The position numbers were made by a program, and so were the translations under genes. DNA of 64,000 nucleotides from the sequence record LC727697.1; one strand, 5' to 3'. Of the stretch, positions 1-20,025 are shown piece by piece. Under the pieces are notes generated by a model, which saw nothing but the letters and a program-made list of their open reading frames with translations, did no database searches and had not been told where the DNA came from. How positions within the stretch are numbered: position 1 is the stretch's first letter; the number at the start of each line of letters is the position of its first letter.

Positions 1-56
1 ATAAGATTAATTTGCATTTACAACTAGGACATAAAAGGAAAGGGGCAGTTGCCCCT
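1..56. repeat. 56-bp direct repeat copy 1 (operator + terminator; truncated by window edge)
   Basis: Identical to 585-640: ATAAGATTAATTTGCATTTACAACTAGGACATAAAAGGAAAGGGGCAGTTGCCCCT. Confidence 0.95.
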
Positions 57-61
57 ATCTC

Positions 62-352
62 TTATTGTTTGGATAACTTCATTGTCAGCACTGCTACTTC
101 GAGGTCGTCTTTCATTACGCGCCAAAGACCGGTATGTGCCCAGACCACCCTACGTCCACTTACATACTCCATAATGGGACGTGCGAGCTGAGTAACAGTG
201 GTCATCTCTTCTTCAGTAGTATGACCCTTTAGTTTGAACGAAACTTCGATGTTCGGTTTCGTTATATGATTCACTGTGCGCTTACCGAGAACTTCGACAT
301 TAAACAGCGCTAGTTCTTTCTCGAAGCGCTTGTTCACAATCGACATATCCAT
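62..352 (-). CDS. hypothetical protein
   Basis: 96-aa ORF, GGAG upstream, followed directly by terminator hairpin. Confidence 0.75.
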   Translation of the reverse strand: MDMSIVNKRFEKELALFNVEVLGKRTVNHITKPNIEVSFKLKGHTTEEEMTTVTQLARPIMEYVSGRRVVWAHTGLWRVMKDDLEVAVLTMKLSKQ

Positions 353-366
353 TTACTTGCTCCAGG

Positions 367-504
367 CTAATGTGATGTGCGTCTTATCCTCGTACATGCT
401 AGCAGAGCAAGCATCGGGCTTGCAACCGAGTTCTTCGAACATACGCTGTAGGCGAACTTGGCACTGACATGCTCGAACTGTGCCTTTAGGTACTTGCGCT
501 TCAT
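367..504 (-). CDS. small hypothetical protein (45 aa, MKRKYLKAQF...)
   Basis: Manual translation; GGAG Shine-Dalgarno upstream of ATG. Confidence 0.5.
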   Translation of the reverse strand: MKRKYLKAQFEHVSAKFAYSVCSKNSVASPMLALLACTRIRRTSH

Positions 505-574
505 AGCAATTACTCCGTATAGCTACATATATGCTAACATCTTACCGCAGTAATGCAACAGGAGATTGACTTGT

Positions 575-606
575 GCAAATGCAAATAAGATTAATTTGCA
601 TTTACA
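575..606. promoter_or_regulatory. hexamer-phased operator (Fur-box-like)
   Basis: GCAAAT GCAAAT AAGATT A ATTTGC ATTTAC. Confidence 0.7.
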
Positions 607-640
607 ACTAGGACATAAAAGGAAAGGGGCAGTTGCCCCT
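585..640. repeat. 56-bp direct repeat copy 2
   Basis: Identical to 1-56. Confidence 0.95.
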
Positions 641-645
641 TTCCT
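617..645 (-). terminator. intrinsic terminator
   Basis: AGGAAAGGGGC-AGTT-GCCCCTTTCCT stem, T-run on minus strand, just after stop of 659-1114. Confidence 0.85.
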
Positions 646-658
646 GTGTTAGCAGCGC

Positions 659-1114
659 TTACTTTTTGCTGCCGCCTTTGCTGCCGCCTTTGCGGGCGGG
701 CTTAGCTTCGGCTGCCGGGGTCTCCGGCGCATCCTCGGTCTGCGCCGCCGGGGCTTCTGCTTGCGCTTCTGCCGTTGCCTGGGCATCGGTCTGCGCCGCC
801 GGCGCGGGGAGGGGTTGCCCTTGTTCGCCGTTGCTAACGGAGTGCTTTACTGCATCCTCGAACGCCCGTGCAATGCGGATTGCACTGAACACGCCTTCCT
901 GTGCAAACTGCACCTCTACGCCGTTAACGGTAGCGTGCATGCTCGCGTTCCAGCTACGCTGGGTTTTTGTGCTGTAGAGCGGGAAAGCTTGCCCTACTAC
1001 TACCCCGTTAACTTTTAGGTCGAGCACACTTCCGACCTCCTTGTTAGCGGTGCGCACGATGCGCAGGGTGCCGATGTTCTCTACCGTTACAGCAGGGATG
1101 CTTACATTAGACAT
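659..1114 (-). CDS. early protein with Ala/Pro/Lys-rich tail; paralog of 18824-19528
   Basis: GC-rich codon usage, GGAG SD; shares NGVV.GQ...R.W.A...VQF.Q..VFSAIRI.R with 18824-19528. Confidence 0.85.
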   Translation of the reverse strand: MSNVSIPAVTVENIGTLRIVRTANKEVGSVLDLKVNGVVVGQAFPLYSTKTQRSWNASMHATVNGVEVQFAQEGVFSAIRIARAFEDAVKHSVSNGEQGQPLPAPAAQTDAQATAEAQAEAPAAQTEDAPETPAAEAKPARKGGSKGGSKK

Positions 1115-1146
1115 AGCTTGTACTCCGTTGTGTTGTTTATGTGTGT

Positions 1147-1175
1147 AGCTTACTAGGGATGCTACACTGTGTCTA
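1147..1175 (-). promoter_or_regulatory. sigma70-type promoter
   Basis: TAGACA-17-TAAGCT with upstream A-tracts. Confidence 0.7.
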
Positions 1176-1462
1176 CTACTTTTTAAAAACTTTTATGCTT
1201 GCAAGCACATTGCTTGTTTGCATGTCTGTAGTGTGTAGGATTTCGCAGGTATTGTACAATTGTATATTTCTATTAAGACAGGCACGTTAATAGACGACGT
1301 CTTTTCTGCATTTTGCTATGTAAAGCTACAGGTGTGCGCATGCGCATGGGCCCTAAAACGCGCTACAAGCGCGCATAACAGCGTTTGTGCGCGTAGCTGT
1401 ACTAACGCATTGCTTAGCACTACTACGCAGCATACAGCGCTTACAGCGCTTTTAGCGGCATT

Positions 1463-1573
1463 GCAAATGTGAATTATTCTTATTCTATCTATTGTAGCAA
1501 ATAAGAATTAATCGCAATTACAAATAAGAATTATTTACATCACTAAATGCAAATAAGAATAATTATTATTTGT
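1463..1573. promoter_or_regulatory. cluster of four Fur-box-like operators
   Basis: GCAAAT GTGAAT T ATTCTT (1463); GCAAAT AAGAAT T AATCGC (1497); ACAAAT AAGAAT T ATTTAC (1520); GCAAAT AAGAAT A ATTATT ATTTGT (1549). Confidence 0.7.
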
Positions 1574-1589
1574 ATTTGCAATGATAAAA

Positions 1590-1661
1590 GATAAAGAAAA
1601 AGATAAAGATAAAGAAAAAGATATTGAAAAAGAAAAAGATATTGATAATGAAAAAGAAACT
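1590..1661 (+). repeat. 12 in-phase purine-rich hexamers GA(T/A)ANN
   Basis: G at 1590, 1596 ... 1656; units GATAAA/GAAAAA/GATATT/GATAAT/GAAACT. Confidence 0.9.
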
Positions 1662-1664
1662 AAA

Positions 1665-2009
1665 TTATTTCTTTCTTTTATAAATTATTGACTGAACGGT
1701 AATACAGAATATATAAGTCAAAACTGACATAAAATAATAACTTGTTATAAGAATGGTTATTATTAAACACGAAACAAATGTAGTTATATTGACTGGATTT
1801 TTCAATCCTATATAATATAAAGGAGTTATAAGTAAAAACAATAATAACGTCGTAAGGAACAACGAAATGGTTTGCATGAATATGTCGTGAATAAATGACA
1901 TTTTATCATATGAAAAATATATACATCCGACACTACAGCGAAATATATTAAAACCATTATACAATGGATAATGTCTTTTACTTATTATACTTTTATTATC
2001 AAACAACAT
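1665..2009 (-). CDS. hypothetical membrane protein
   Basis: 114-aa ORF with two hydrophobic segments; start uncertain. Confidence 0.5.
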   Translation of the reverse strand: MLFDNKSIISKRHYPLYNGFNIFRCSVGCIYFSYDKMSFIHDIFMQTISLFLTTLLLFLLITPLYYIGLKNPVNITTFVSCLIITILITSYYFMSVLTYIFCITVQSIIYKRKK

Positions 2010-2416
2010 ATAGGTATTAAAGATAATCGTATAGGATAAAATAAATTGTATTTCTTAATACGTTTATGCGTATGTACATGCGTATGCAAACACATATAGC
2101 ACACTCATATTCGCATTTTATATTGCAATGCAAGGTTGAGATAAGAATCCAAAATTCAAATATAACTTTTGTAATATGATTTAGGAAATATATTTCATAG
2201 AATGGTTTTTGATATAAATGTAAGTAGCTAATTAGATATGATTATTGTATTTCATTTAAAAAGTGTCCAGTAAAATGTGCGACGAGGTGTTTCTAGTGAT
2301 ACATATCCTATAGAATATTTCGCTGTACTTAACCTTATTCTCTTATTGTTTAAAATTACTATGTATTCTGTCCATTTGCTAAGATAAAAAATTGATGACA
2401 TTTAACACCTACAATG

Positions 2417-2446
2417 AAAGGAAGGGGTTAAACCCCCTTCCTTTTT
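2417..2446. terminator. intrinsic terminator (bidirectional-like)
   Basis: AAAGGAAGGGG-TTAAA-CCCCTTCCTTT. Confidence 0.8.
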
Positions 2447-2672
2447 ATTTAACTATTATCACTAATGCTATGAACACTATGCCCCATGCAATGTCTCCGT
2501 TAAATATAGCACCAATCCCGACAATGACCGAAAATACATCAATTAATGATCCTTTTCGTTCGGGCGACATAAATGCTGTGCATAGCAACAGTGCGATAAA
2601 ATACCAGATATTTCCAGTAACAATTGCAACAATAGAAGCTATGCATGCAACTATATTAGCAAGACCGCCCAT
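2445..2672 (-). CDS. small membrane protein
   Basis: Multiple hydrophobic helices; GGGG SD-like upstream. Confidence 0.7.
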   Translation of the reverse strand: MGGLANIVACIASIVAIVTGNIWYFIALLLCTAFMSPERKGSLIDVFSVIVGIGAIFNGDIAWGIVFIALVIIVK

Positions 2673-2673
2673 A

Positions 2674-3402
2674 TTATCCCCCTTGGGTCACGATGTATTC
2701 CCAATTAAGCCGGGTGACTCGACCGTCGACATTGCTGCGAATGCTCACTTGATCGTCGATTCCGCAGATGTTACCTTGTACATATTTCCATCGGGCAACA
2801 TCGTTGGGATACGAACGAAGGGGAACTACAGCCATAACTTCTTGCCCGAGATGATACCACCCGATGTCCAGATCGCTTTGCAAGCGGGCATATACGAGGC
2901 GAATCAATTCGGGACTAACAGACCATACCAAGTCTTTCTCTACATCCCACCACAAGACTGCCCCGCCGCGGATGGCCTTGCCGTCACTGAAGTAGTTACT
3001 GAATGAACAGAACTCGTCAGTAGTGTAGTCGAGGATCTCCCGACGATATTGTTCCCTGACCATCGAACCCGGTGCAAGGCACATACCATACACCGGAAAG
3101 TATCGGAAGAAGCAGCTCATGTTGCTTACTTGCAACGGCTGATCATCGTCATCGTAAACTTGAAACACCGTAGGGCTCGACTCGACTGAGCGGAAAGAAG
3201 AAACGAAGTTTTTAACACTCTCTTCGAATCCATCCAGCCGACCGGTGGTAGGACGCAACCATTTCAGCAGACCAGTGTTGTCCATGTCTACGTTTACGCT
3301 AAAAGAAAGATACTTAGACATAATATAATCTCTTATAAAAAGGTTATTTGGATCTGTTCTTGCTTTCGTGCATATTATTGCGCATATTGCTATATGCGTC
3401 AA
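2674..3402 (-). CDS. hypothetical protein (likely start MSKYLSF at 3321)
   Basis: Long ORF, GC-richer core. Confidence 0.75.
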   Translation of the reverse strand: MTHIAICAIICTKARTDPNNLFIRDYIMSKYLSFSVNVDMDNTGLLKWLRPTTGRLDGFEESVKNFVSSFRSVESSPTVFQVYDDDDQPLQVSNMSCFFRYFPVYGMCLAPGSMVREQYRREILDYTTDEFCSFSNYFSDGKAIRGGAVLWWDVEKDLVWSVSPELIRLVYARLQSDLDIGWYHLGQEVMAVVPLRSYPNDVARWKYVQGNICGIDDQVSIRSNVDGRVTRLNWEYIVTQGG

Positions 3403-3949: not shown

Positions 3950-3968
3950 GTAAATAAGATTAATTTGC
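3950..3968. promoter_or_regulatory. Fur-box-like operator
   Basis: GTAAAT AAGATT A ATTTGC between terminator and promoter. Confidence 0.7.
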
Positions 3969-3985
3969 ACTTACACTTAACATTC

Positions 3986-4015
3986 AAAAGGAAAGGGGCT
4001 TAAATCCCCTTTCCT
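3986..4015 (-). terminator. intrinsic terminator
   Basis: AGGAAAGGGG-CTTAAAT-CCCCTTTCCT. Confidence 0.8.
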
Positions 4016-4532: not shown

Positions 4533-4814
4533 TTGCTTTTCCTCGTAGATAAAAGAGTACTTCTTTTCTGTTCAATGCATGATAAATGCACTATTGATAT
4601 AATATCTAGCAGTTGAAGTTTCTTATCAAAATTCTCAGCAAACTTAATCTTTAGACAAAGAATGAACTTCATCTTTGTTCTTTTGGTGCTATATGCTTAC
4701 ATTTTTATTATAAACTATTATAGCATGATTGTATTTTATATAAACAGAAAGTTTGTAACAGGTTCTGCAAATTCTAATTATTTGCGATTGCATATATCAA
4801 AAAATATAGAACTA

Positions 4815-6518: not shown

Positions 6519-6543
6519 GCAAATAAGATTAATTCGCGTTTGC
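6519..6543. promoter_or_regulatory. Fur-box-like operator (25-bp form)
   Basis: GCAAAT AAGATT A ATTCGC GTTTGC. Confidence 0.7.
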
Positions 6544-7852: not shown

Positions 7853-7980
7853 TATGCAATTATAAGCTATATAACGCGCTTTTTAACGTTAGCAATATGT
7901 ATGTATTAGCTATGCAAATTTATGCGTTATAAAGCATCTTCGGTGCAAATGCGAATTATTTACGTTTATAAAAGAAAAAT

Positions 7981-8003
7981 AAAGGGGGATAATTCCCCCT
8001 TTA
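7981..8003. terminator. intrinsic terminator
   Basis: AAAGGGGGA-TAAT-TCCCCCTTT; operator variant GCAAAT GCGAAT T ATTTAC at 7945. Confidence 0.8.
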
Positions 8004-8006
8004 TTT

Positions 8007-8363
8007 TCAAACGTTAGCTTCGTACCATTCGAAAGAAGATTTAATTTGTTCTACTTCGTTTGAAGTAATTGTTCTCGGAGTAAGAAATTCTTCATACGAA
8101 GACGGTTTAATTTCATTTACGTCGTCTTCTGATTTCAAACCGAGATACTCGCCTGTTTGAATAGAATAAACATGATACATTTGTTTGCCTTGCTTAATTC
8201 CTGCTCGATGCCCGCGGACTACCGAATCAACTACAACGCCATTAGCAGTTGAAATAGGAGTGATAACATTGAGTCGAACAACAATACGGGTATTATGCAT
8301 TTTAATACATTCCTTTCCAAAAATCGTCTTCATCTTGATATGTATCGTATTCATATATGTCAC
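8007..8363 (-). CDS. hypothetical protein
   Basis: ORF ending at terminator; start uncertain. Confidence 0.7.
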   Translation of the reverse strand: MTYMNTIHIKMKTIFGKECIKMHNTRIVVRLNVITPISTANGVVVDSVVRGHRAGIKQGKQMYHVYSIQTGEYLGLKSEDDVNEIKPSSYEEFLTPRTITSNEVEQIKSSFEWYEANV

Positions 8364-8886: not shown

Positions 8887-8956
8887 GCAAATGCAAATTA
8901 ATCTTGTTTAACTTGTAACATACAAAAGAAGCAGGAATAATTCCTGCTTCTTTTTC
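8887..8956. terminator. operator (reverse orientation) + intrinsic terminator
   Basis: GCAAATGCAAATTAATCTTGTTTAAC then AAAAGAAGCAGGAA-TAA-TTCCTGCTTCTTTT. Confidence 0.8.
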
Positions 8957-9817: not shown

Positions 9818-9848
9818 GCAAATGCAAATAAGATTAATTAGTGTTTGC
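9818..9848. promoter_or_regulatory. Fur-box-like operator
   Basis: GCAAAT GCAAAT AAGATT A ATTAGT GTTTGC. Confidence 0.7.
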
Positions 9849-9899: not shown

Positions 9900-10076
9900 T
9901 TAGTATGTTACTCCTACCCAAAAGTAGCCTACTCGCAGGTAGCAGTGATGGCCGTCATAATATATCGGCTTACACCAAATAAAAGGTTCATTGGGTTTGC
10001 TACCCCAAGTCGGATCCCATCCTATATTCCAATCACCATAACGCACAGCCCAATATATATGTTTTAAGATATTCAT
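9900..10076 (-). CDS. small Trp/Tyr-rich protein (58 aa)
   Basis: Manual translation MNILKHIYWAVRYGDWNIGWDPTWGSKPNEPFIWCKPIYYDGHHCYLRVGYFWVGVTY. Confidence 0.55.
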   Translation of the reverse strand: MNILKHIYWAVRYGDWNIGWDPTWGSKPNEPFIWCKPIYYDGHHCYLRVGYFWVGVTY

Positions 10077-10228
10077 TTATTTTTGCCTCTATCATAATAG
10101 CTAGTTGATATTTTTGTAGTTATCATAAGATAATTACTACTTAGCATCAAAGACAAAGTAGTCATGCCTTCTTTATTGTCACTTAATACAGGAATAAAGA
10201 ACTGGAATTAATTATTCTTTATTTTTTG

Positions 10229-10282
10229 CAGTATTGATGCTGATACAAGAAACTGTAATAGTCTATATCAGCATCAATACTG
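10229..10282. repeat. perfect 17-bp inverted repeat
   Basis: CAGTATTGATGCTGATA-20-TATCAGCATCAATACTG. Confidence 0.95.
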
Positions 10283-10287
10283 ATAAT

Positions 10288-10518
10288 TTACTCTGTAGAC
10301 GTAGAAACTAGTGCTTGAACATTAATCGAGAAATTGCTATACATTTGATTAGTAAATTTCTCGAAATCATCTGATTCGACGAATTTTGCCATTGCAGCCA
10401 AAAAAGCTTTCTTTTTATCACTTTCGGGATCATCAGTAGGATGGGCATATTCACTGATAGCTTCGTTTTGGCCATGGATACCGATGTTAAAGACATATCC
10501 GTTATATTTGAGGCTCAT
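10288..10518 (-). CDS. hypothetical protein
   Basis: 76 aa, AGGAG SD. Confidence 0.7.
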   Translation of the reverse strand: MSLKYNGYVFNIGIHGQNEAISEYAHPTDDPESDKKKAFLAAMAKFVESDDFEKFTNQMYSNFSINVQALVSTSTE

Positions 10519-10572
10519 TTATGCTGCTCCTTCTGGTAGGATCATAATGATAATTCTCTCGCTTTACTTCAA

Positions 10573-10626
10573 TTATTTCTTTGCATTCTTATAAAGCTGA
10601 TTTATTGTTTCCCAGTCGGGTTGTTC
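10573..10626. repeat. 54-bp direct repeat copy 1
   Basis: 51/54 identical to 13848-13901. Confidence 0.9.
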
Positions 10627-10829
10627 GTAGATGTCATATGGGTGAGCTCCGATTCAACAGCCTGTAGTGCTGCTCGCATTCTGGCATTCTCTGCCTTTAG
10701 CTGTTCCAGCTCAGCTATAAGACTGAGAATTTCTTGTGGCTTTGCTGATGCTATTAACGCCACATAGCTATCAAATTTACAATCGAGAGCCTGTTCCGCT
10801 AGCTTCTTCATTTTGTTGATGTCAATCAT
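10602..10829 (-). CDS. ead/Ea22-like protein
   Basis: MIDINKMKKLAE...A.P..IL.LIAELE.L.AEN pattern. Confidence 0.6.
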   Translation of the reverse strand: MIDINKMKKLAEQALDCKFDSYVALIASAKPQEILSLIAELEQLKAENARMRAALQAVESELTHMTSTNNPTGKQ

Positions 10830-10853
10830 TTGGTGGCTCCTTTGAGGATTTCG

Positions 10854-11168
10854 TTAAGATCGCAGCATCTCGGCGAGTTGATCGACAGTCTCTCGCAGCG
10901 CCTCGTTCTCCGCCTTGAGTTTGTCGATCTCGTCTAGCAAGTCGAGGACGGCTCGGGGGTTGGCGGCAGCACAGAAAGTGGCGTTAGCCTTGTCCTGCTC
11001 CAAATCGCTGTAAAAGCCTTCGTTACCGATCACGACTTCGCCATTGTCCGCTCGGATTACAGGAAACAGATTCGACCATGCAATGTCATCGCCTTCCTCC
11101 CAAGTTGCATACCACGGACCCGGCGTAGCCAGTTTTGCTAGCTTTTTTATTTTGTTGGTGTCGGTCAT
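10854..11168 (-). CDS. ead/Ea22-like protein
   Basis: LAKLATPGPW...ANATFCAAANP.AVL.LLDE pattern typical of the Ea22 family. Confidence 0.7.
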   Translation of the reverse strand: MTDTNKIKKLAKLATPGPWYATWEEGDDIAWSNLFPVIRADNGEVVIGNEGFYSDLEQDKANATFCAAANPRAVLDLLDEIDKLKAENEALRETVDQLAEMLRS

Positions 11169-11356
11169 GGAATCATCTCCGCCATTTCGGTAATAGCCTT
11201 TGCTAGGGCAAGGGCGTGTTCACAGTTACGGGCGCTTTTGCGAAGTGGAGTGCTGACGATGCGCATGTTAGTCACCCAAAATGTAAGCGATTAGGCAGGC
11301 GTAAATGGCCAGTCCAGGATGGCCAGAGAAGGCAAGGACTAGAGCGATTACCCAGA

Positions 11357-11623
11357 TCATGCGATCTCCTCCTTCGCCTGCAGTGTCATGTTGAGGTTAT
11401 ATTGCTTAGCGCAGGAGCAAAGGCGGCGAAGTTCATCGTTCTCGTCCGCCATGTGAAAAAATTCGATGTTGTAGTTGTTCAGCTTCAACTTACCGCTGCT
11501 GAATTTGGCAGATACGCGATGGCCTTGCGTGTGCAGGCTAAGGCCAAGATAGCGGAGTATCGACCTGTGGTCGGTTGGGATAGGTTCGTTCTTTGTGTTG
11601 ACGACAAACAAATTGATGGTCAT
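11357..11623 (-). CDS. hypothetical protein
   Basis: ORF in GC-rich island, tightly spaced. Confidence 0.65.
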   Translation of the reverse strand: MTINLFVVNTKNEPIPTDHRSILRYLGLSLHTQGHRVSAKFSSGKLKLNNYNIEFFHMADENDELRRLCSCAKQYNLNMTLQAKEEIA

Positions 11624-11626
11624 GCT

Positions 11627-12028
11627 TCACCCGAAGTCATACGCTTTCAGAACGCCATGTTTATCGTAGCCGACTTGACCACAATCTATGCTGCCTACCC
11701 AATCAGGAAAGTTTGCATGGGTGTTGTTCTTCCAATCCACTTCAACCAAACGCTCTTGCATGACGCAAATGAAGCCTCCGATTTCTAGCCAGCGTCCGCG
11801 CGCCAAGTAGCTGCCGGAACAGCTACCTTCCCAATCGTTGCACCGCTCACCCCTGTCATTAATCGGGAACTTCAGGACGTAATGCTTAGATAGAAAGCAT
11901 GCCCGTGTGATACCAATCTTCGGCTCACCGTACTTGGCAAACAACCGATTCAGTTGTTGCTGGGCAAGTTCATTGCGGTGCTGGGCGATGAAACCGCCAA
12001 ACAGCAATTTGTCCAACACAATGTTCAT
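11627..12028 (-). CDS. minimal protein-kinase-like fold protein
   Basis: G..R..F...YVLK.P....G..CN.WE ... MQER ... D..QVG...AYDFG. Confidence 0.5.
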   Translation of the reverse strand: MNIVLDKLLFGGFIAQHRNELAQQQLNRLFAKYGEPKIGITRACFLSKHYVLKFPINDRGERCNDWEGSCSGSYLARGRWLEIGGFICVMQERLVEVDWKNNTHANFPDWVGSIDCGQVGYDKHGVLKAYDFG

Positions 12029-12052
12029 TCTGCGTGTCCTACGTGGAGACCA

Positions 12053-12487
12053 TTACAGATCCCGGATAGCTTCGGCGTTTTTTTCAAACCACTTGACTAG
12101 CTTTTGCATAGCTTCGGCTGGTGTCTTGCCCTTGATCTTGCGGAACTTGATCACTTCCGAACGATAGGGGATAGACCACGTTAGCAGCTCAATTTCGACC
12201 GGCGAACCTTCTGGCAATACATTCCCGCGATTGTCACACAAATTCATCATAAAGCGCATGTAACCGCTCGCATTCATCAGAATGCTGTTCGGGGCTTCGG
12301 AAGCGCAACCGACATTCGCAAACGAAATTGTCATCGACGGACCAAGGTTATCGGAAACCGACGCGGCGGCGATGTAATTCGGAAAAATCTTAGCCATGGA
12401 AGTTTTGAAGTCTTCGGCGGCTTGCTTGGTGTTTTCTACGATCATTTTTGAATCTCCGGGGCTGTTAGTCATGGCTTGTCTCCCCAT
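12053..12487 (-). CDS. hypothetical protein
   Basis: ORF in GC-rich island. Confidence 0.7.
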   Translation of the reverse strand: MGRQAMTNSPGDSKMIVENTKQAAEDFKTSMAKIFPNYIAAASVSDNLGPSMTISFANVGCASEAPNSILMNASGYMRFMMNLCDNRGNVLPEGSPVEIELLTWSIPYRSEVIKFRKIKGKTPAEAMQKLVKWFEKNAEAIRDL

Positions 12488-12735
12488 TTCACTTCAAGCC
12501 ACAGGTCAACAGACTGGCGTCCTTCGGCATGCACCGCACAGTCGAAGCCGAGACTACGCAACACTTTGAGGATCGCTTCGCTGCGCCGCGAGGTGCCGAT
12601 GCCGAACCCATAGGCGCGGGTAGTGTACACGTACTTTCCTTCTGCGGCTGCTTTGGCGATGTCGTTGAGGATGGCATCGACATCGTCTTTCGCTCGCGCT
12701 ATGTCACGGGCTTGCTCAGCGGTCAGTCTGCTCAT
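12469..12735 (-). CDS. hypothetical protein (88 aa, MSRLTAEQARDIA...)
   Basis: Internal ATG at 12735 overlaps stop of 12732-13055; the longer ORF-track start is antisense/overlap noise. Confidence 0.7.
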   Translation of the reverse strand: MSRLTAEQARDIARAKDDVDAILNDIAKAAAEGKYVYTTRAYGFGIGTSRRSEAILKVLRSLGFDCAVHAEGRQSVDLWLEVKWGDKP

Positions 12736-13055
12736 TTCACTGCCTCGATACCGGCTTCTTGGAGGGCTTCTTCCTGCGCCTTGAGCATTGCTTCGTAGGC
12801 TGGGAGGCATAGACCTCCTATGTAGTTTGTATCTGGGCAGACCACGGCGTCGTAGGTATCTTCCAACCAAGACGGGCACTGCCGCGGCATCGGGACGTAA
12901 TCCTTCATCAGTGCCACACGACTGGCTTTCCAGGCCTCGTAGCGTGCCTGAACATGCGGGTTGAGGTACAAGTCGTCGACTGCATTGTACGCAAGCGGTG
13001 CCGAAGAACGAGTCCGAACCCACGATTCAAATTCTTTTTTCATGTTAGGCTCCAT
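12732..13055 (-). CDS. hypothetical protein
   Basis: EFE.W...Y....VQA.YEAW.ASR pattern typical of prophage accessory genes. Confidence 0.7.
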   Translation of the reverse strand: MEPNMKKEFESWVRTRSSAPLAYNAVDDLYLNPHVQARYEAWKASRVALMKDYVPMPRQCPSWLEDTYDAVVCPDTNYIGGLCLPAYEAMLKAQEEALQEAGIEAVK

Positions 13056-13131
13056 TAAATCAAAACGTTATGTGTTACTTCTACTATACGTACTAACAGT
13101 ATACAACGTATTAGTACGTATAGCAAACGAA

Positions 13132-13719
13132 TTATTTGTCTATCCACGCAAAGTAAAATGACTTGTCCTCGGGACAACCTACTTTGATGTACTGATACGT
13201 GTCAACATCAGTATTCTCTTTTACTAGAGCTACTAATCTATCAATACAATTGAAATTTGACTCGCTACTATCTTTACGCACAAACCACGGAGTGATCTGG
13301 ATTTCTGATCCCAAATGATACATAACTGCTTTTATGTTTTTTGCAACAAACCAACTGTCAGAAATATCTACTGCACTGTGGTTAACAGTTACATAATCTG
13401 CATTATCGGGTGTTACACTAAATAGGTAATCGACATCCGGTAAACGAACCATACTAAGTGTGGCATATCCTTTAGTGATGTGTTTAGCTTCTATACCAAG
13501 TTCGTTCAGTATACTTTCAGTAGAATGACTCCAAAATTCTACTATATTGATAATAACACGCCACTGAGCTGATTGAAGGATCCGATATTGGATGATACGT
13601 AACTTGCCGGTCCACTCATAGCTTCGTTCATCCATAACTGCTTCGACTTCGATATCATCCCCGTCTTTGATATCCCATGCATAGCACATATCATTTCTCC
13701 TGTATATAGTTTTATGCAA
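13132..13719 (-). CDS. hypothetical protein (likely start MCYAW at 13689)
   Basis: AGGAG SD upstream of 13689. Confidence 0.75.
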   Translation of the reverse strand: MHKTIYRRNDMCYAWDIKDGDDIEVEAVMDERSYEWTGKLRIIQYRILQSAQWRVIINIVEFWSHSTESILNELGIEAKHITKGYATLSMVRLPDVDYLFSVTPDNADYVTVNHSAVDISDSWFVAKNIKAVMYHLGSEIQITPWFVRKDSSESNFNCIDRLVALVKENTDVDTYQYIKVGCPEDKSFYFAWIDK

Positions 13720-13771
13720 CTACATGTAATGTAGCACTTCAAAATAGAAAACACAATAGGATTAAATTTGT

Positions 13772-13838
13772 GCAAATAAGATTAATTAGTATTTGCTAAT
13801 ATAGATCCAAAAAGAAAGGGAATTATAATTCCCTTTCT
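13772..13838. terminator. operator + intrinsic terminator
   Basis: GCAAAT AAGATT A ATTAGT ATTTGC then AGAAAGGGAA-TTATAA-TTCCCTTTCT. Confidence 0.8.
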
Positions 13839-13847
13839 AAATATGCA

Positions 13848-14396
13848 TTATTTCTTTGCATTCTTATAAAGTTGATTTATTGTTTCCCAGTTGGGATGTT
13901 CAGAATCCCATACTTGCCAATTAGGATAACAAAGTTTTATTTCAGATAACCTCTTTGTAGTAACGTCATTAAACAATGAAAAATCTTCCTTCATTGTTTC
14001 GTATACATTGTCCGGTAACATGTTGTCGGCTTTTTTGTAATATTCTGTTACTTCGTTGAAACTCGAGTATTTCTTTAAAAGTCGACGAAATTCTTTTACA
14101 TTCTTTTCATATCTTGCATACAAAGGTGCTAATACGTTGAATGCATTATAATTAAATCCTATCTTATATACTACATTCATTTCTCGAAGATCTGTCATGA
14201 ATCGATTCTGAACTTCGTATAATTCGTTAAATGAAGGAGTAAGAACACCAATACGTTTAACAAACGACAGTGATGACTTGCGCTTAGATTGATCATCACT
14301 ACCTGAAGGTTCGAATTTAAATTCCAAGTCGGCAACTGGATTTACCTTGTAATGTTCTAGAAAGAAATAAAATACTTCTAATGCTTTGTAGTTCAT
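13848..14396 (-). CDS. hypothetical protein
   Basis: 182-aa ORF; its last 54 bp are duplicated at 10573. Confidence 0.75.
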   Translation of the reverse strand: MNYKALEVFYFFLEHYKVNPVADLEFKFEPSGSDDQSKRKSSLSFVKRIGVLTPSFNELYEVQNRFMTDLREMNVVYKIGFNYNAFNVLAPLYARYEKNVKEFRRLLKKYSSFNEVTEYYKKADNMLPDNVYETMKEDFSLFNDVTTKRLSEIKLCYPNWQVWDSEHPNWETINQLYKNAKK

Positions 14397-15140: not shown

Positions 15141-15842
15141 AATTATTGTTTAGTTTTTATCTTCATATTCATTACGATAAAACTAAACAATAATTAATTC
15201 TTATTTGTAATTATATTGCTTTTGCTCTTGCTCTTAGCGGTAAGGGTGAAGGCCCTTAGATGCTGTGCAAAGCACAGCAGAAGCGTCCATTTCCAAGTAG
15301 GTTCAGGAAATTATATTCTCCCGTAATTACGGGAGAATATAAAACCCATATGCCAATATAGGACGAGGGCATAAGTACTCAAAACCATTTCGTAATATGG
15401 ACGAGGCGGGGACCTTTTTCCTCAGATTACATCATTCTCTCATTGTTTCCAATGAATCCCGGAACATCGATGTTATATACCTATGCTAGAAAATTTACAT
15501 CAATGCTGAAGTTGGTGTGTATATTCTTTTGTATATCCGTGTGAAATACAAGCAAGAATTACACTCTGTTTCTACCAGAGCTTCATCCTTTTATTACATA
15601 TCTAATATCGGATAAGATATATAATACGTTTCGCATAGTCCTTTGCAACATTAGACATATCCTTGTCTAACGACTATACTTCAGCACCCAAAATCATAAT
15701 TTAAATAACCCACTTTTGTATGCTTTAATCTGTCTCTAACAGAACAATACTGTGGGCACGATGGGGATAGTTTCTACTACCAATATCCAATAATGGAACA
15801 GAGCTGCTTGTGAATGGAACAAAGTAGCTGTTACGACAGCAT
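15141..15842 (-). ncRNA. candidate structured ncRNA 2 (about 600-700 nt)
   Basis: Consensus promoter upstream, no ORF of 60 aa or more, nested helices, GAAA tetraloop, terminal long hairpin. Confidence 0.7.
15311..15342. repeat. perfect 32-bp palindrome
   Basis: TTATATTCTCCCGTAATTACGGGAGAATATAA. Confidence 0.95.
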
Positions 15843-16368: not shown

Positions 16369-16773
16369 TTAATAAAACGAAGCTATTCCGTATTCTAAAT
16401 TAGAGTCAAAATATACTATATATCTTTCACTATTATTCAACAAATCTATTTGTTCTTGTGTTATTTCTGTATATTTAAATTTTATAATAGATTTATGTGT
16501 AACTAAATCATTGAGCTTAGCATAAAGATTGTCTAATACAGGCATTTCATCAGTGTTTACTTCGTTTAATATAACGGCAACACTTTCTTGCTGGCAATAT
16601 ATATAATATATATTCATTACTACATAAAGGTATTTTATTCCCTTTATACTTGTCCTACTCTTAGCACTAACACATACATGTTCCATATCTTTGTTAAAAC
16701 CATACTGAAAATGTTTATTTGCATGTATGTTTACGTACCCGATTAGTTTAGCAATTTTAAGAATATCTTCCAT
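16369..16773 (-). CDS. hypothetical protein
   Basis: Tightly packed operon. Confidence 0.65.
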   Translation of the reverse strand: MEDILKIAKLIGYVNIHANKHFQYGFNKDMEHVCVSAKSRTSIKGIKYLYVVMNIYYIYCQQESVAVILNEVNTDEMPVLDNLYAKLNDLVTHKSIIKFKYTEITQEQIDLLNNSERYIVYFDSNLEYGIASFY

Positions 16774-16774
16774 A

Positions 16775-17116
16775 TTAATTATAATAATTAGTGGGTAAAT
16801 ATTTGTTTCTGTAATTCAGCAATACGCTATGAGTGCATGAATCGGAATTAGAAAATACATGCGCATGCATGAGTATGTGTGTTTCTGCATACGGGTTGCA
16901 TTTTACTTCAACCGTTATTTTTATTATATGATCCCATATGATAGCGAAACATCCAATTTCTTGTTTTATATTCGAATATTTAAGGATTGCGACCATAACC
17001 AGTATTTTATTTAATTTATATGATTGTATTTTTTGCTGAAGAGGAACAGACAGATCAGTTATAGTGCATGCCTTATCAAAATCAAAGTCTTCTGTATTTC
17101 CGTTTTTATCTATCAT
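16775..17116 (-). CDS. hypothetical protein
   Basis: Tightly packed operon. Confidence 0.65.
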   Translation of the reverse strand: MIDKNGNTEDFDFDKACTITDLSVPLQQKIQSYKLNKILVMVAILKYSNIKQEIGCFAIIWDHIIKITVEVKCNPYAETHILMHAHVFSNSDSCTHSVLLNYRNKYLPTNYYN

Positions 17117-17131
17117 ATGTCACTACTTCTT

Positions 17132-17344
17132 TTATTTCTTGGACTGAAATTGGATAGTAACAAACATATAGCTTAACCGCGCAACACCCCAAATAACCGA
17201 TAGAAGGGAAATAAAGATAACAACTGGATTATTGTCAGTATTGTTATCTATATACATTACTAAATTTATACCGCATATAAACACAATCATTATCAACGAA
17301 GTTACACAGACGTTGTATAGCACAGTGGTAACTAATTTAAGCAT
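17132..17344 (-). CDS. small membrane protein
   Basis: Two TM helices; GGGG SD-like. Confidence 0.65.
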   Translation of the reverse strand: MLKLVTTVLYNVCVTSLIMIVFICGINLVMYIDNNTDNNPVVIFISLLSVIWGVARLSYMFVTIQFQSKK

Positions 17345-17602
17345 GTTTTAAACCCCCTACAAAGCGCATGTAAGCATGCATTTTAAAAGCAGTATGTGTG
17401 TATTGCTTGTAACGCATACCCCGCAAAATCGTGCAAAAAATGCACATTTTAACGCTATATACTGTCATGTTACGGGTACGGGACCTGCGTTTCCTACGTA
17501 AAGCATTATCTTCTTTGTTTTGCTAAAATGTATGCCGTGCGCATAGTAAGACAATCTGTATATGCTATGCAATTGAACATATCTTTTTAATCTAATCATA
17601 CA

Positions 17603-17908
17603 CTATTTTCTGAAGAAGAGAATAAGTGTAGTATACTCTTCGCAACAATCATTATTTGCCCATTGAATAGAAAAGGGCAAATTTAAATCTTTTTGAATCA
17701 AATAATTGCTCACAACTGATTCGACATTAATTTGTTCTGCCGAATCTAATTTACCATTTTTGCGAATATTTCGTATTGTAACGGTATTACACAAATTACC
17801 ATTTGTGTAAAATATATCCGAATACTTTACATTAATAGATTTTAGGGCATTAACGATTGTTGTTTGCATATGCTGAAATCCCTTTGAGGCATTCTTTGTT
17901 ATGTACAA
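17603..17908 (-). CDS. hypothetical protein
   Basis: ORF; start uncertain. Confidence 0.55.
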   Translation of the reverse strand: MYITKNASKGFQHMQTTIVNALKSINVKYSDIFYTNGNLCNTVTIRNIRKNGKLDSAEQINVESVVSNYLIQKDLNLPFSIQWANNDCCEEYTTLILFFRK

Positions 17909-18191
17909 ATTTTCTATATTTAGAACCTTCTATATAGAAACTAACAAGTATAATTAGATTGTCATCTCGCACTTGTATACATTTTGAGAACCGTCGCCCG
18001 AACAAATTGTCTATAGTATTAGTTTTGTACTGTAAGAGAGGTATATTAATCATTAATGCAAAATAAGTAACACACAAATTTTAATACATGTAAGATGTAT
18101 TGCACACTGTATTTTAAAATATCAATTGCACTGTTATATAATATATTAACAGCAAATACTTTTAATAGCAACTGATTGTTTATATGCAATT

Positions 18192-18210
18192 ACAAATAAG
18201 AGTAATTTGC
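18192..18210. promoter_or_regulatory. Fur-box-like operator
   Basis: ACAAAT AAGAGT A ATTTGC. Confidence 0.65.
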
Positions 18211-18239
18211 AATTGCAACTCATACAATAAGAAAATGAA

Positions 18240-18389
18240 TTAGATAATAAATGATACCTTAGTAATATTGAAAGAATATGTAGGCCAAATAGAAGTAGAA
18301 TTATTAATCTTAATATCTATCATATGTATACCATAAGCTTTATGATATAGTATATTAGATAGACCGTTTGATATAAAGAATATATTCAT
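18240..18389 (-). CDS. single-unit member of the microprotein family (49 aa)
   Basis: Manual translation MNIFFISNGLSNI... Confidence 0.5.
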   Translation of the reverse strand: MNIFFISNGLSNILYHKAYGIHMIDIKINNSTSIWPTYSFNITKVSFII

Positions 18390-18523
18390 ATTAATACTTT
18401 TTTATAAAAGTAATGCAAGTATTGTCTAATATAGGAACTGTCGGAATAATTATCATTAAAGAAAACGCAGGTGTGTTTACTTCTAGATAGTAGTCATATG
18501 TAAAATTATTGACTGTTATATAG

Positions 18524-18748
18524 TCATTTCTTATTCCACGACATATCTCTAATATAGTGTTCATAACTTCCTACAGGTATTGTATTAGAAATAATTTTAG
18601 ATACAAGTATGTTATTATAAAATGGATAGGTTATAAAAATATCAGCGTCGCGTGTTATTATGTCTATGTAACAGCATTGTGTCGCTGGCATAGAATACCA
18701 AGTTATTGCATACAAACTAGCTGATATAGAAAATATAGTTAAAGACAC
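18524..18748 (-). CDS. hypothetical, family-like N-terminus
   Basis: SLTIFSISASLYAI. Confidence 0.5.
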   Translation of the reverse strand: MSLTIFSISASLYAITWYSMPATQCCYIDIITRDADIFITYPFYNNILVSKIISNTIPVGSYEHYIRDMSWNKK

Positions 18749-18781
18749 AGTAGTATAGTATATAGATTATATGGTCATGAA

Positions 18782-18808
18782 GAAAGGGGAGCAAATTGCT
18801 CCCCTTTC
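18782..18808 (-). terminator. intrinsic terminator
   Basis: GAAAGGGGAGC-AAATT-GCTCCCCTTTC. Confidence 0.8.
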
Positions 18809-18823
18809 GGCGCAGTTGGGCAA

Positions 18824-19528
18824 TTACTTGCTTTCCTGCGCCGCCCCGGCGATCGCTGCGTTCTTTTCAGCGACCTTTTCGGCGCGCTCAGCTTCGCGCT
18901 TGGCCTTGCGTTCGTCAGCTTCGCGCTTGGCAGCCGCCGCTTTTTCTTCGCGTTCCTTCTTCTCGGCATCGCGCTTGGCCTTGCGTTCGGCAGCTTCTGC
19001 CTCGGCCTGCGCTTTGCGGTTGATCAGGAAGCCCTTGCCGCTGTTCGCCTTGCCGGCGCCGAGTTCAAAGACGAAGCCCAGGCGACGCAGCTTGTTGCCG
19101 ACGGAAGTGCTGTTCTGCTCGAAGTTGGCCTTGTCGACCCCGTCGAACACCAGGGTAGCTTCGTCGAAGCCGGTGTGGGTGATGGCCGCCTTGACGATCG
19201 CGATCGCGTTGCTGAGCCGGCTTTCGTCGGTGAGCGGTTTCGGACCCTTCTGCCCGGGAACTTTCGGTTCCGGGGTGTACTTGGCCGCCAGTTCCTTGCC
19301 GTCGAGCGCCTGCTCGATTTCGCGGGTGATGCGGATCGCGCTGAACACTTCCTTCTGCTCGAACTGTACGACGGTGCCATCTGCCAGTTCGACTTCGGCG
19401 GTCGCCGACCAGGTGCGCTTGCTCGGGGTGGTGTAAGTAGCCATGGTCTGGCCGATGACCACGCCGTTGATTGCCAGTGCCAGGACGTGCTGTTTGTCGG
19501 TACGTTGACGAGTGATATGTACGGACAT
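18824..19528 (-). CDS. early protein with Ala/Lys/Glu/Arg-rich coiled-coil tail; paralog of 659-1114
   Basis: Strongly GC3-rich codons, GAGG SD, tandem promoters, terminator. Confidence 0.9.
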   Translation of the reverse strand: MSVHITRQRTDKQHVLALAINGVVIGQTMATYTTPSKRTWSATAEVELADGTVVQFEQKEVFSAIRITREIEQALDGKELAAKYTPEPKVPGQKGPKPLTDESRLSNAIAIVKAAITHTGFDEATLVFDGVDKANFEQNSTSVGNKLRRLGFVFELGAGKANSGKGFLINRKAQAEAEAAERKAKRDAEKKEREEKAAAAKREADERKAKREAERAEKVAEKNAAIAGAAQESK

Positions 19529-19611
19529 GTTGTATACCTCTGTAGCTGATGGAAGGATTATGTTGTTTACTTACTACACTTTCGGGGCACTTACCCCTTA
19601 AGCTTGTATAC

Positions 19612-19735
19612 AGTGTAGAGCCTAGTTTGCATTGCGTCAAGCATTTTTTGTTTACTTTCTGCGTTGCTTACTATGTAGCGCTCTACACACTGCGTCTACA
19701 GTTCGCACTTTAAGGTCGTAGTAATGGAAAGTCAA
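19612..19735 (-). promoter_or_regulatory. tandem sigma70 promoters with A-tract UP elements
   Basis: TTGACG-17-TACACT (19612-19640) and TTGACT-17-TAAAGT (19707-19735), both preceded by AAAAAATGC. Confidence 0.85.
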
Positions 19736-19901
19736 GCATTTTTTAAAATATTTTTAAATTATTTTTTACCATCTTGTATACGCGCGCGAGCTATATATAG
19801 CAAGGTCAATCAGTATGGTGTAGAATTATAATTTATAAACAAATCAACTACTTATCTACTATCCATTTCCAAGTATGCTACCAATCCATATACTGGGCAG
19901 T

Positions 19902-20025
19902 GCAAATGCAAATAAGATTAATTATTATTTGCATATTCTTTTTCGTTGCAAATGCAAATACGAATTAGTCTTATTTACAATAACAAATGAAATTACAAAC
20001 GCAAATAAGAATTAGTCTTATTTGC
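19902..20025. promoter_or_regulatory. cluster of three 25-bp Fur-box-like operators
   Basis: GCAAAT AAGATT A ATTATT ATTTGC (19908); GCAAAT ACGAAT T AGTCTT ATTTAC (19954); GCAAAT AAGAAT T AGTCTT ATTTGC (20001). Confidence 0.75.

Follow-up and report, generated by a model that had tools for sequence, protein, structure and literature searches.

Fur-box-like palindromes form an array across the early region of Pseudomonas jumbo phage 30-2

The 64,000-nucleotide stretch analyzed here (the window) is the start of record LC727697.1, the genome of the PA5oct-like Pseudomonas jumbo phage 30-2 (Wroclawvirus). Its early region carries a recurring motif. Each unit spans 25 bp and is imperfectly palindromic, with a 12-1-12 geometry and the consensus GCAAAT AAGAWT w AWTnnn rTTTrC. 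A preliminary description of the sequence had proposed a 19-bp F-F-x-R unit, a reading that arises when positions 14-19 read ATTTGC and that gives way to the 25-bp unit. It had also described hexamers added in 6-bp steps, and this phasing is exact, with extra GCAAAT/ATTTGC hexamers flanking the units in strict register (GCAAAT at -6 and 0 only, and ATTTGC at +13, +19, and +25 only, relative to the unit). The motif is real and far above chance: a 19-mer search allowing up to three mismatches gave 8 matches against 0.10 expected, and a 25-bp matrix of the phage copies gave 16 local maxima of at least 13 bits within the window. The last copy ends at 20,025 and no match of at least 12 bits follows between there and 64 kb, in agreement with the earlier statement that no clear copy lies beyond 20.1 kb. 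The left half-site GCAAATAAGA is near-invariant (across 6 genomes, 2.5% of its columns vary), ∼88% of the phage copies have A at position 7, the right inner triplet of the consensus is variable, and ∼80% of the copies share one orientation relative to transcription.

Each of the 17 positions listed earlier holds a copy of the motif or part of one. The copy given at position 1 is the 3' part (1-21, + strand) of a complete copy split by the arbitrary start of the record; the remaining 4 nt, at the 5' end of the copy, close the record, and GTGCAAATGCAA|ATAAGATTAATTTGC is continuous across the junction. Positions 1-56 are also the right part of a 107-bp cassette that is directly repeated (promoter part, motif, and terminator), with the second copy at 534-640, and the pair flanks a 584-bp two-gene segment missing from PA5oct and MIJ3. 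The motif at 581-605 (GCAAATAAGATTAATTTGCATTTAC) is joined by an in-phase GCAAAT at 575-580 (together 575-605, + strand; 36.6 bits with the phage matrix and 11.1 bits with the Fur matrix described below), and the intrinsic terminator of the upstream unit (620-645, - strand) lies 15 nt before it on the transcribed (-) strand. A four-copy cluster comprises the promoter-proximal copy at 1463-1487 (- strand; Fur matrix 16.0 bits), a copy at 1497-1521 (+; phage matrix 30.8 bits, Fur matrix 11.6 bits), a weaker one at 1520-1544 of which only the left half is good (+; Fur matrix 10.7 bits), and the copy at 1549-1573, which with an in-phase ATTTGC at 1574-1579 spans 1549-1579 (+) and at 22.7 bits is the top Fur-matrix match genome-wide. 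Adjoining this cluster is a run of 12 in-phase hexamers (1590-1661, +; GATAAA/GAAAAA/GATATT/GATAAT), each at least 4/6 identical to GATAAT, the sole run of six or more in the window.

Farther along lie an AAGATT sub-type copy at 3950-3974 (+; phage matrix 30.6 bits, Fur matrix 5.2 bits; terminator 3992-4011) and a weak copy at 4767-4791 (+; phage matrix 18.6 bits) that adds to those previously listed. The copy at 6519-6543 (+) falls just after a region homologous to PA5oct ncRNA002, and a predicted TTGACT-17-TACATT promoter begins 20 nt downstream on the - strand. It is followed by a copy with G at position 7 (GCAAATGCGAAT...; 7945-7969, +; Fur matrix 15.0 bits; terminator 7975-8008), a reversed copy at 8887-8911 (-; phage matrix 28.0 bits), and a copy at 9824-9848 with an in-phase GCAAAT at 9818-9823 (together 9818-9848, +; phage matrix 35.0 bits). 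Immediately downstream of the copy at 13772-13796 (+; phage matrix 36.8 bits, Fur matrix 9.3 bits; terminator 13813-13838) is an early gene (13132-13689, -) 96% identical to PA5oct gp52, an anti-END nuclease inhibitor as shown by experiment. At 15184-15208 (-) only one half-site is good (ACAAATAAGAAT), and this copy and the one at 1520 are weak copies or half-sites. After a copy at 18192-18216 (+; phage matrix 30.1 bits, Fur matrix 9.6 bits), the array ends in a three-copy cluster: 19908-19932 with GCAAAT at 19902-19907 (together 19902-19932, +; Fur matrix 16.1 bits), a near-symmetric copy at 19954-19978 with GCAAAT at 19948-19953 (together 19948-19978; Fur matrix 12.3 bits), and the near-perfect palindrome GCAAATAAGAATTAGTCTTATTTGC (20001-20025, +; Fur matrix 18.6 bits), the last copy of the window. 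A purine-rich 42-bp tandem repeat (20030-20141, +) adjoins this cluster.

The copies occupy a regular place between the terminator of one transcription unit and the promoter of the next, as had been described. The distance from terminator to motif is tight (about 7-16 nt, mostly ∼15), and where a sigma-70-type promoter could be predicted, by predictions that barely exceed random, the motif is centered near -63 to -70; the spacing of 17-22 bp upstream of the -35 element given earlier holds for ∼7 copies, and for predicted promoters. Different cassettes share homology beyond the motif into the linker and terminator, with 85-97% identity across 60-67 bp, and the 107-bp repeat flanks a two-gene indel between relatives. 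This would suit a motif with no dedicated protein partner, forming the conserved center of a terminator-promoter cassette that moves and spreads by recombination or, in a variant, a DNA-structural element (cruciform or bend). The promoter-early stem-loop (PeSL) elements of Arbiol et al. 2010 are reportedly mobile regulatory cassettes of this kind in T4-type phages. PeSLs and the PA5oct-type cassettes alike repeat early promoter and stem-loop modules, lie in early regions that are hyperplastic, and border the segments in which relatives differ in gene content, a likeness of architecture; the PA5oct-type cassette differs in that a 25-bp Fur-like palindrome is added after the terminator and before the promoter. 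We consider a partnerless motif very improbable, because many copies have only the 25-mer in common within otherwise unrelated flanks, the clusters of 3-4 copies lack terminators, some copies are reversed, an RNA-level check of the region gave no RNA family match and no unusual fold, and the hexamer-phased palindrome and its match to the Fur matrix would be left unexplained. Genes are also gained and lost by recombination at the cassette of terminator, operator, and promoter.

About 8 further copies lie at record positions 280,199-287,165, reaching back ∼7 kb before the window start, so that the strong copies genome-wide form one 27-kb block (280.2-287.2 kb plus 0-20.0 kb) with ∼25 copies per genome unit, roughly one per early transcription unit. 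The claimed confinement to the early region thus holds across the genome, save for a single outlying copy of 20 bits at 249,414 and a borderline match of 12.6 bits at 188,168; nothing else in the remainder of the 287-kb genome reaches 12 bits with the phage matrix. The block coincides with experimentally defined early genes, the PA5oct copies spanning 8,670-35,435 within the RNA-seq-defined early genes gp34-gp105. Five relatives conserve it with 18-22 copies each, and all Fur-matrix matches of at least 12 bits in their 34-48-kb loci fall within the block. The sole early gene outside the block, gp450, carries no motif, and the motif is therefore not required for early transcription as such.

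The Fur boxes of Acinetobacter baumannii are 25-nt palindromes with a free center (PMC3055841), and a matrix built from 21 iron-induced promoters of this species gave leave-one-out scores of 11.9-26.3 bits. When all 25-mers in the 287 kb were scored with this Fur matrix, the top 10 were phage copies in the same register (15.0-22.7 bits), and the block, with 9.5% of the genome length, held 9/9 matches of at least 16 bits and 13/18 of at least 12 bits. Within the window there were 6 matches of at least 12 bits against 0.08-0.9 expected. The column-wise similarity between the phage and Fur matrices was 17.84, compared with 5.06 ± 2.53 in shuffles, of which 0/20,000 reached this value. About half of the copies are within the score range of the iron-responsive A. 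baumannii boxes, and about half, of the AAGATT sub-type, score 5-11 bits, under the leave-one-out minimum. Identity to the E. coli 19-mer averages 11.6/19, compared with 10.25 ± 1.04 for AT-matched background. This low identity, on which the preliminary description had dwelt, is misleading, since Pseudomonadales-type Fur boxes are 25-nt palindromes of GAGAAT/GCAAAT-type hexamers and such a matrix ranks the phage copies best in the genome; as a sequence match, the Fur-box likeness is better supported than had been claimed.

Gammaproteobacterial Fur boxes (the classical 19-bp GATAATGATAATCATTATC and the 25-nt A. baumannii form, PMC3055841) share with the phage motif hexamers in 6-bp register, the core AAT-n-ATT, and outer arms AAAT...ATTT, and the A. 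baumannii form also shares the 12-1-12 palindrome with its free central base. The phage copies differ in having A for G at position 7 and G for T at position 9, a variable right inner triplet, sites upstream of rather than over the predicted core promoters as in classical Fur repression, and ∼25 copies packed into one 27-kb block of a lytic phage. The outer GCAAAT/ATTTGC hexamers are the half-site of the crystallized Magnetospirillum Fur-feoAB1 operator TTAATTGCAAATCATTTGCAATTGC (Deng et al. 2015, PMC4506495), where Arg57 reads the G, Tyr56 the Ts, and Lys15 the narrow AT minor groove (PMC4506495); there the hexamers are 1 bp apart (6-1-6), whereas in the phage they are 13 bp apart with AAGAWT inside.

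Exact matches to the motif pattern number 39 in bacterial genomes, compared with about 2 expected by chance for a ∼39-bit pattern by our own estimate, and they sit upstream of genes for TonB-dependent receptors, TonB, DUF4198, and an AraC regulator. In Pseudomonas sp. SID14000 a site nearly identical to the phage motif (GCAAATAAGATTTATTCTAATTTAC) lies 21 bp upstream of an operon encoding a FecI-type iron-starvation sigma factor, FecR, and a TonB-dependent transducer. Such sites are presumably bound by Fur, given what is established for operons of this type. In the orthologous operators of other pseudomonads position 7 alternates between A and G and position 11 among T, G, and C. These are exactly the positions at which the phage motif deviates from the canonical box, and this variation covers both of the phage's "non-canonical" features. 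With the Fur boxes of the genome collection estimated at ∼10^7, the exact matches could also be the tail of Fur-box diversity.

A Fur homologue was found neither in the phage nor in any Wroclawvirus, and a search of the 30 larger early-block proteins gave no transcription-factor domain. The annotated early-block "DNA binding protein" was rejected as a transcription factor, its match being a weak DenV-like glycosylase one. Together with the reliance of PA5oct on host RNAP, these negative searches support host Fur as the binder. They also speak against a rival binder, a dimeric DNA-binding protein with sequence specificity that the phage encodes or brings in with the virion and that controls the early block, e.g. 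by switching its promoters off or raising their activity. On that view the motif resembles Fur boxes because it descends from, or converged on, a palindrome of AT-rich hexamers. Such a protein would account for several features: the near-invariance of GCAAATAAGA, which holds information beyond what Fur matrices need and, with the orientation bias, suits a more sequence-specific binder or common cassette ancestry; positions 7 (A) and 9 (G), consistently off the Fur optimum; the strict limitation to one temporal block; and an infection for which the accessible part of the PA5oct paper reports no iron response. Most early proteins are ORFans without Pfam classification. Modified G is reported in GA/GG contexts of PA5oct DNA (bioRxiv 10.1101/2025.03.31.646159), so a 7-deazaguanine-type base would fall on the invariant G9 of the motif, and a phage protein could be adapted to it. 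However, the cassette paralogy accounts for part of the half-site invariance, iron-uptake promoters of Pseudomonas and of further Proteobacteria use the same 25-mers, and the Fur-matrix register match, the 6-bp phasing, and the adjacent (GATAAT)n-like run would all be unexplained coincidences. A phage binder, which the preliminary description had named as an alternative, is less likely but still a serious rival.

If Fur does bind, its main effect could be in trans, with the replication-amplified array, present twice per virion genome, titrating Fur and derepressing the host regulon, e.g. to supply iron to the phage NrdAB ribonucleotide reductase (nrdA/nrdB are encoded). The Fur-likeness evidence serves this decoy equally, and the ∼25 sites per genome unit, the multi-copy clusters, and the 12-hexamer run suit it. 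A parallel is the unrelated tailed-phage contig IMGVR_UViG_3300033068_002045, for which no relatives were found in the phage collection. Like the motif copies of phage 30-2, its Fur boxes are many and closely spaced, but they are canonical (AAATGATAATGATTATCATT), ∼44-45 bp apart with an 89-bp period, and form a single dense tandem array at the contig end without obvious cis target, whereas phage 30-2 has one per transcription unit. A sponge needs neither one site per unit at a fixed distance from the terminator nor a consistent orientation, and such regular placement favors a role in cis. The predicted affinity is moderate for most copies, and the host transcriptome, in the accessible part of the PA5oct paper, highlights NAD, psl, nap, Pf1, and pili genes and no iron-starvation regulon. 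A pure decoy is thus weakly disfavored and, overall, unlikely.

The reading that we favor, with evenly balanced confidence, is that the array consists of operators for host Fur acting on the early transcription units. Host Fe2+-Fur dimers would bind each 25-bp unit, and the in-phase extra hexamers and clusters would let further dimers add on. The early block is terminally redundant, and almost all of its transcription units contain one such site, set ∼15 nt after the terminator of the preceding transcription unit. The sites would thus tune host-RNAP early promoters by iron status and, taken together, would amount to a considerable sink for Fur. Binding by P. aeruginosa Fur, and an effect of that binding on transcription, we infer from sequence. 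Placement at about -63 to -70 probably points to modulation, and the high expression of early genes in rich (iron-replete) medium makes strong repression less likely, fitting activation, anti-silencing, insulation, or a mild effect better. The host-Fur reading is weakened by the A at position 7, where Fur matrices prefer G, the copies under the leave-one-out minimum, the positions upstream of core promoters, the motif-free early gene gp450, the lack of a highlighted iron-starvation response in the part of the PA5oct paper noted above, the reported G modification, and the possibility that the exact bacterial matches are a tail of Fur-box diversity.

Stx1 prophages carry a Fur-regulated toxin promoter (cf. 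PMC4506495), likewise a host Fur box on a phage genome that makes a phage-borne gene iron-responsive. That case is a single site at a moron gene of a temperate phage, whereas here an array extends across the early program of a virulent jumbo phage, which may thereby couple its first genes to the iron status of the host.

The sequence matches Pseudomonas phage 30-2 (LC727697.1) from base 1 to base 64,000 at 100% identity. This PA5oct-like jumbo phage, with a genome of 287 kb, belongs to the genus Wroclawvirus; over the first 8 kb there are ten relatives at 97-98% identity. The recurrent motif reported in the preliminary description is real, with eight 19-mer matches at no more than three mismatches against 0.10 expected. 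As to its unit, alignment of all copies upheld the 25-bp reading and not the 19-bp F-F-x-R form: the element is GCAAAT AAGAWT w AWTnnn rTTTrC (ideal form GCAAATAAGAAT-T-ATTCTTATTTGC), a 12-1-12 imperfect palindrome with a near-invariant left half and a variable right inner triplet. Hexamers are indeed added in 6-bp steps, GCAAAT being confined to offsets -6 and 0, and ATTTGC to +13, +19 and +25. Where about 17 copies had been listed, a 25-bp matrix gives 16 in the window, the last of which ends at 20,025 with nothing comparable up to 64 kb, just as had been claimed. A piecewise scan of the rest of the record added about eight further copies at 280,199-287,165, and since the record begins at an arbitrary point, inside one motif copy, the two groups form a single contiguous block of 27 kb. 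Outside this block only two matches reach 12 bits, an outlier at 249,414 and a marginal one of 12.6 bits at 188,168, which bears out the confinement of the array to the early region.

The same arrangement is found in the relatives, with Callisto, PAC2, Cassandra, MIJ3 and PA5oct carrying 18-22 copies apiece in the homologous block. The early genes of PA5oct (gp34-gp105) lie in a 39-kb terminal repeat and are transcribed from a single strand (PMC7318152), which corresponds to the minus strand in the window. In PA5oct coordinates the copies span 8,670-35,435, a stretch within these early genes; the opening 8.6 kb of the repeat has no copy, nor does the sequence past 35.5 kb. The motif is also absent from gp450, the sole early gene outside the repeat, which indicates that early transcription as such can do without it. 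In ungapped comparison, 5.0% of motif columns are variable compared with 8.9% (p = 0.009), a difference driven by the left half alone that weakly suggests purifying selection on the motif. No match to the phage pattern was found in IMG/VR, and a literature search for the literal half-site sequence found nothing relevant.

Tandem clusters of three to four copies occur at two places, 1463-1579 and 19902-20025. Adjoining the four-copy cluster, at 1590-1661, are 12 in-phase GATAAT-like hexamers, each matching at four or more of six positions (GATAAA GAAAAA GATAAA GATAAA GAAAAA GATATT ... GATAAT), the sole run of six or more in the 64-kb window. Two further repeats were observed beside motif copies. 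At about 284,287-284,336 of the record (20287-20336 of L006, a later piece of it), a 13-bp unit that reads ATTTGATAATTGG on the transcribed strand is repeated four times in tandem. Every unit includes the Fur 7-mer TGATAAT, and the repeats lie directly upstream, in the sense of transcription, of the copy at 284,262. At 20030-20141 a purine-rich 42-bp unit with a 12-bp sub-period (ATGAATAAGGAA) is repeated in tandem (2.7 copies); it adjoins the three-copy cluster and separates it from the counterpart of PA5oct ncRNA001, a highly expressed RNA.

The inverted-repeat hexamer architecture of the motif, 12-1-12 in a 6-bp register, is that of a Fur box, and the geometry is shared with the 25-nt Fur motif of Acinetobacter baumannii, for which the 22 Fur boxes of iron-induced promoters form a 25-nt palindrome with position 13 free, one of them being GATAATAAGAATTATTTTTATTTGT (PMC3055841). 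Identity to the classical E. coli 19-mer is low, as had been stated, with copies averaging 11.6/19 against an AT-matched phage background of 10.25 +/- 1.04, but this mismatch count is too crude a measure because Pseudomonadales-type boxes are 25 nt long with GAGAAT/GCAAAT hexamers. We rely on a symmetrised matrix built from the A. baumannii boxes (21 distinct sites, which score 11.9-26.3 bits in leave-one-out runs), which is not specific to P. aeruginosa. In a blind scan of the 287-kb genome with this matrix, the ten best 25-mers, at 15.0-22.7 bits, are all motif copies in the same register, and the block, which makes up 9.5% of the genome, contains nine of the nine matches at 16 bits or more and 13 of the 18 at 12 bits or more. 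In the background comparison proposed with the Fur-box reading, the window gives six matches at 12 bits or more against expectations of 0.08 (shuffled) to 0.9 (random sequence at 24% GC). Compared column by column, the two matrices have a similarity of 17.84 at offset 0 as against 5.06 +/- 2.53 for column-shuffled matrices, and the observed value is attained in none of 20,000 shuffles (p < 5e-5).

The phage consensus departs from Fur in having A for G at position 7 (the canonical G is A in ∼88% of copies) and G for T at position 9, and at position 11 in the sub-type of copies whose second hexamer is AAGATT, which scores 5-11 bits with the A. baumannii matrix. This sub-type is present in bacteria, in the operator of a Pseudomonas FecI operon, whose footprint over six lineages reads GCAAAT AAGATT..., GTAAAT AGGATT..., GCAAAT GAGAGT..., ATAAAT GAGACT... 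and CTAAAT GAGATT.... The operator toggles at exactly the positions where the phage consensus departs from Fur, which places both phage deviations among the variants that a presumed Pseudomonas Fur operator shows in nature. In the crystallized Magnetospirillum Fur operator TTAATTGCAAATCATTTGCAATTGC, Arg57 contacts the G of GCAAAT, Tyr56 the thymines and Lys15 the narrow minor groove (PMC4506495); judged by sequence, the phage motif has the G of GCAAAT and T-rich inner arms as in that operator, and mostly A in place of the canonical G at position 7.

The phage pattern has 39 exact matches in 185,579 bacterial genomes compared with about two by chance (our own estimate for a pattern of ∼39 bits), mainly in Gamma- and Betaproteobacteria, and several are isolated AT-rich 25-mers in genomes of 60-73% GC. 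The unconstrained triplet in these matches is often ATC, which makes that half ATTATCATTTGC, the canonical Fur form. The sequence class of the motif is found at promoters of bacterial iron regulons: neighboring genes encode TonB-dependent receptors (loci L017, L023 and L030) and TonB (L038), as well as a DUF4198 protein (L029), an AraC regulator (L027) and AhpC peroxiredoxins, and in Pseudomonas sp. SID14000 (L024) an operon for a FecI-type ECF sigma factor, FecR and a TonB-dependent transducer begins 21 bp downstream of the match. Two near-exact matches are themselves conserved operators, GCAAATAAGAATAATTGTTATTTRC upstream of an ahpC-type peroxiredoxin gene in seven Paraglaciecola genomes, and GCAAATAAGAATAATTTACATTTRC between DUF2177 and a small membrane-protein gene at six loci, four of them in Alteromonas/Alteromonadaceae genomes or MAGs and two in otherwise unclassified Alteromonadaceae/gammaproteobacterial MAGs. 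Taken together, the sequence tests mark the element as a probable Fur-box-type operator array, and it is somewhat more likely than not that Fur binds it in vivo.

On the transcribed strand the usual order is gene end, terminator hairpin, a similar linker of ∼15 nt, motif and next unit. The placement between a terminator and the next predicted promoter given in the preliminary description was confirmed at 581, 3950, 6519, 7945, 8887 and 13772 and at 280-287 kb, and in four standard cassettes the next SD-ATG lies 76-83 nt past the motif. The spacing of 17-22 bp to the -35 given there applies to about seven copies, in which the best σ70-like -35 starts 16-23 nt downstream and the motif centers near -63 to -70 of the predicted promoter; the remaining copies have a greater distance or none that can be defined. 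A generic σ70 scan is uninformative in this AT-rich DNA (85 sites compared with 77 expected) and the best candidates on the downstream side of the motif hardly exceed random expectation, so that all promoter positions are to be read as predictions. Because the predicted promoters begin 13-74 nt downstream of the motif, they do not show the -35/-10 overlap of a classical Fur box. The Fur-box reading is partly supported: geometry and bacterial counterparts agree with it, overlap with the predicted promoters does not.

A 107-bp direct repeat of a whole cassette, at 1-56 (with the record end, 287,115-287,165) and 534-640, brackets 584 bp that hold two small genes (62-352 and ∼355-510); this segment is absent in PA5oct and MIJ3 and present in Callisto, PAC2 and Cassandra. 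In this one case examined, the cassettes recombine, and their copies bound differences in gene content between relatives. Both in this respect and as repeated modules in the early region they resemble the PeSL cassettes of T4-type phages, which combine an early promoter and a stem-loop in a hyperplastic early region. Different cassettes are 85-97% identical over 60-67 bp.

This similarity bears on a rival explanation, namely that the motif is bound by a phage-encoded or other protein. The invariance of GCAAATAAGA (2.5% variable columns), the orientation bias, the systematic A7/G9 and the predominance of ORFans among early proteins all speak for such a binder, although paralogy of the cassettes may account for part of the GCAAATAAGA invariance. 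That the binder would be a phage-encoded Fur paralogue is unlikely, judging from a tblastn search with E. coli Fur that gave no homologue in Wroclawvirus at E ≤ 0.01. A domain scan that covered the 30 larger proteins of the early block gave no transcription-factor domain. The protein annotated in relatives as "DNA binding protein" or "endonuclease V" (record 280,586-281,074; L006 16586-17074) has a sub-threshold match to the DenV-like pyrimidine-dimer DNA glycosylase family (PF03013, 21.2 bits compared with a cut-off of 23), and a weak copy of the motif lies 86 bp upstream of its gene. We consider a binder other than Fur improbable, if still a serious competitor to host Fur. Among other candidates, an RNA-level explanation was rejected, with no Rfam hits in 1-22 kb and an ORF-free 348-nt leader (1115-1462) that folds no better than shuffles (z = -0.72); IHF, Fis, a GacA box, Zur and the motif as a promoter were rejected by eye on spacing or key bases.

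For host Fur as the binder, the published biology of PA5oct is relevant. The phage is without its own RNA polymerase and is rifampicin-sensitive, and its authors give 32 σ70-type promoters (TTGAC/TATAATA) and 36 terminators (PMC7318152); the text of their paper has no mention of the motif, Fur or iron. Early expression in their RNA-seq, which covers a single medium, is high in rich medium, accounting for 21% of non-rRNA reads at 5 min (PMC7318152), which argues against strong repression by holo-Fur. Directly downstream of the copy at 13772, on the minus strand at 13132-13689, lies a gene whose product is 96% identical to PA5oct gp52, which experiments have shown to inhibit END nucleases, enzymes that target hypermodified DNA; in PA5oct DNA itself, G is reportedly modified, as a 7-deaza-dG derivative, in GA/GG contexts (bioRxiv 10.1101/2025.03.31.646159). 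Phage 30-2 has queE, queD, folE and PTPS-like genes at 87-88 kb and 143-147 kb of the record. Since G9 (in AAGA), the most invariant base of the motif, sits in a GA step, such a modification may bear on how a host protein recognizes the injected DNA.

The early block also encodes an Ead/Ea22-like protein (10854-11168, minus strand; PF13935, E = 2.5e-10), a family known in lambdoid early regions. GC content is 41-45% at 10001-14000 and 18001-20000 compared with 26-36% elsewhere in the window, which makes the block a compositional mosaic and suggests imported morons.

That the array acts mainly in cis through Fur is, on these data, an evenly balanced proposition. Its use mainly as a decoy that titrates Fur seems unlikely: a pure decoy leaves the placement of one copy per unit unexplained, and an iron-starvation response is not among the host responses highlighted in the account of the PA5oct transcriptome. 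In an unrelated viral contig, L076 (IMGVR_UViG_3300033068_002045), canonical Fur boxes are densely arrayed in tandem at 10740-11325, where AAATGATAAT(G/C)ATTATCATTAAC alternates with ACAAATGATAATGATTATCAC in an 89-bp period of two boxes; at least 13 boxes are present and the array continues off the contig end. The contig is that of a tailed phage by its DUF4055 protein, of a phage portal family, and a weak tail-tube match, and no relatives of the array were found in the phage collection.

Fur is the master iron regulator of P. aeruginosa. We tentatively propose, as a possibility that falls short of an even chance, that nearly the whole early program, including a proven anti-defense gene, is wired to host Fur: some 25 genus-conserved operators in the terminal repeat would connect it to the host iron sensor, host iron status would gate or tune the onset of infection, and the replicating array may secondarily serve as a Fur sponge. 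In the literature searched, no lytic phage is described with an array of this kind, and, if the proposal is true, this would be, within that literature, the first lytic phage to employ a metalloregulator of its host as the global trans-factor of its early genes, and the conserved element missed by the PA5oct omics paper would gain a function. With the independent array of L076, co-option or titration of Fur would then be a recurrent phage strategy. Iron limitation is normal at the infection sites for which treatment with PA5oct-like phages is under consideration. Should early transcription depend on Fur and iron, phage efficacy would track iron availability, and iron chelators or supplements could alter the therapeutic outcome.
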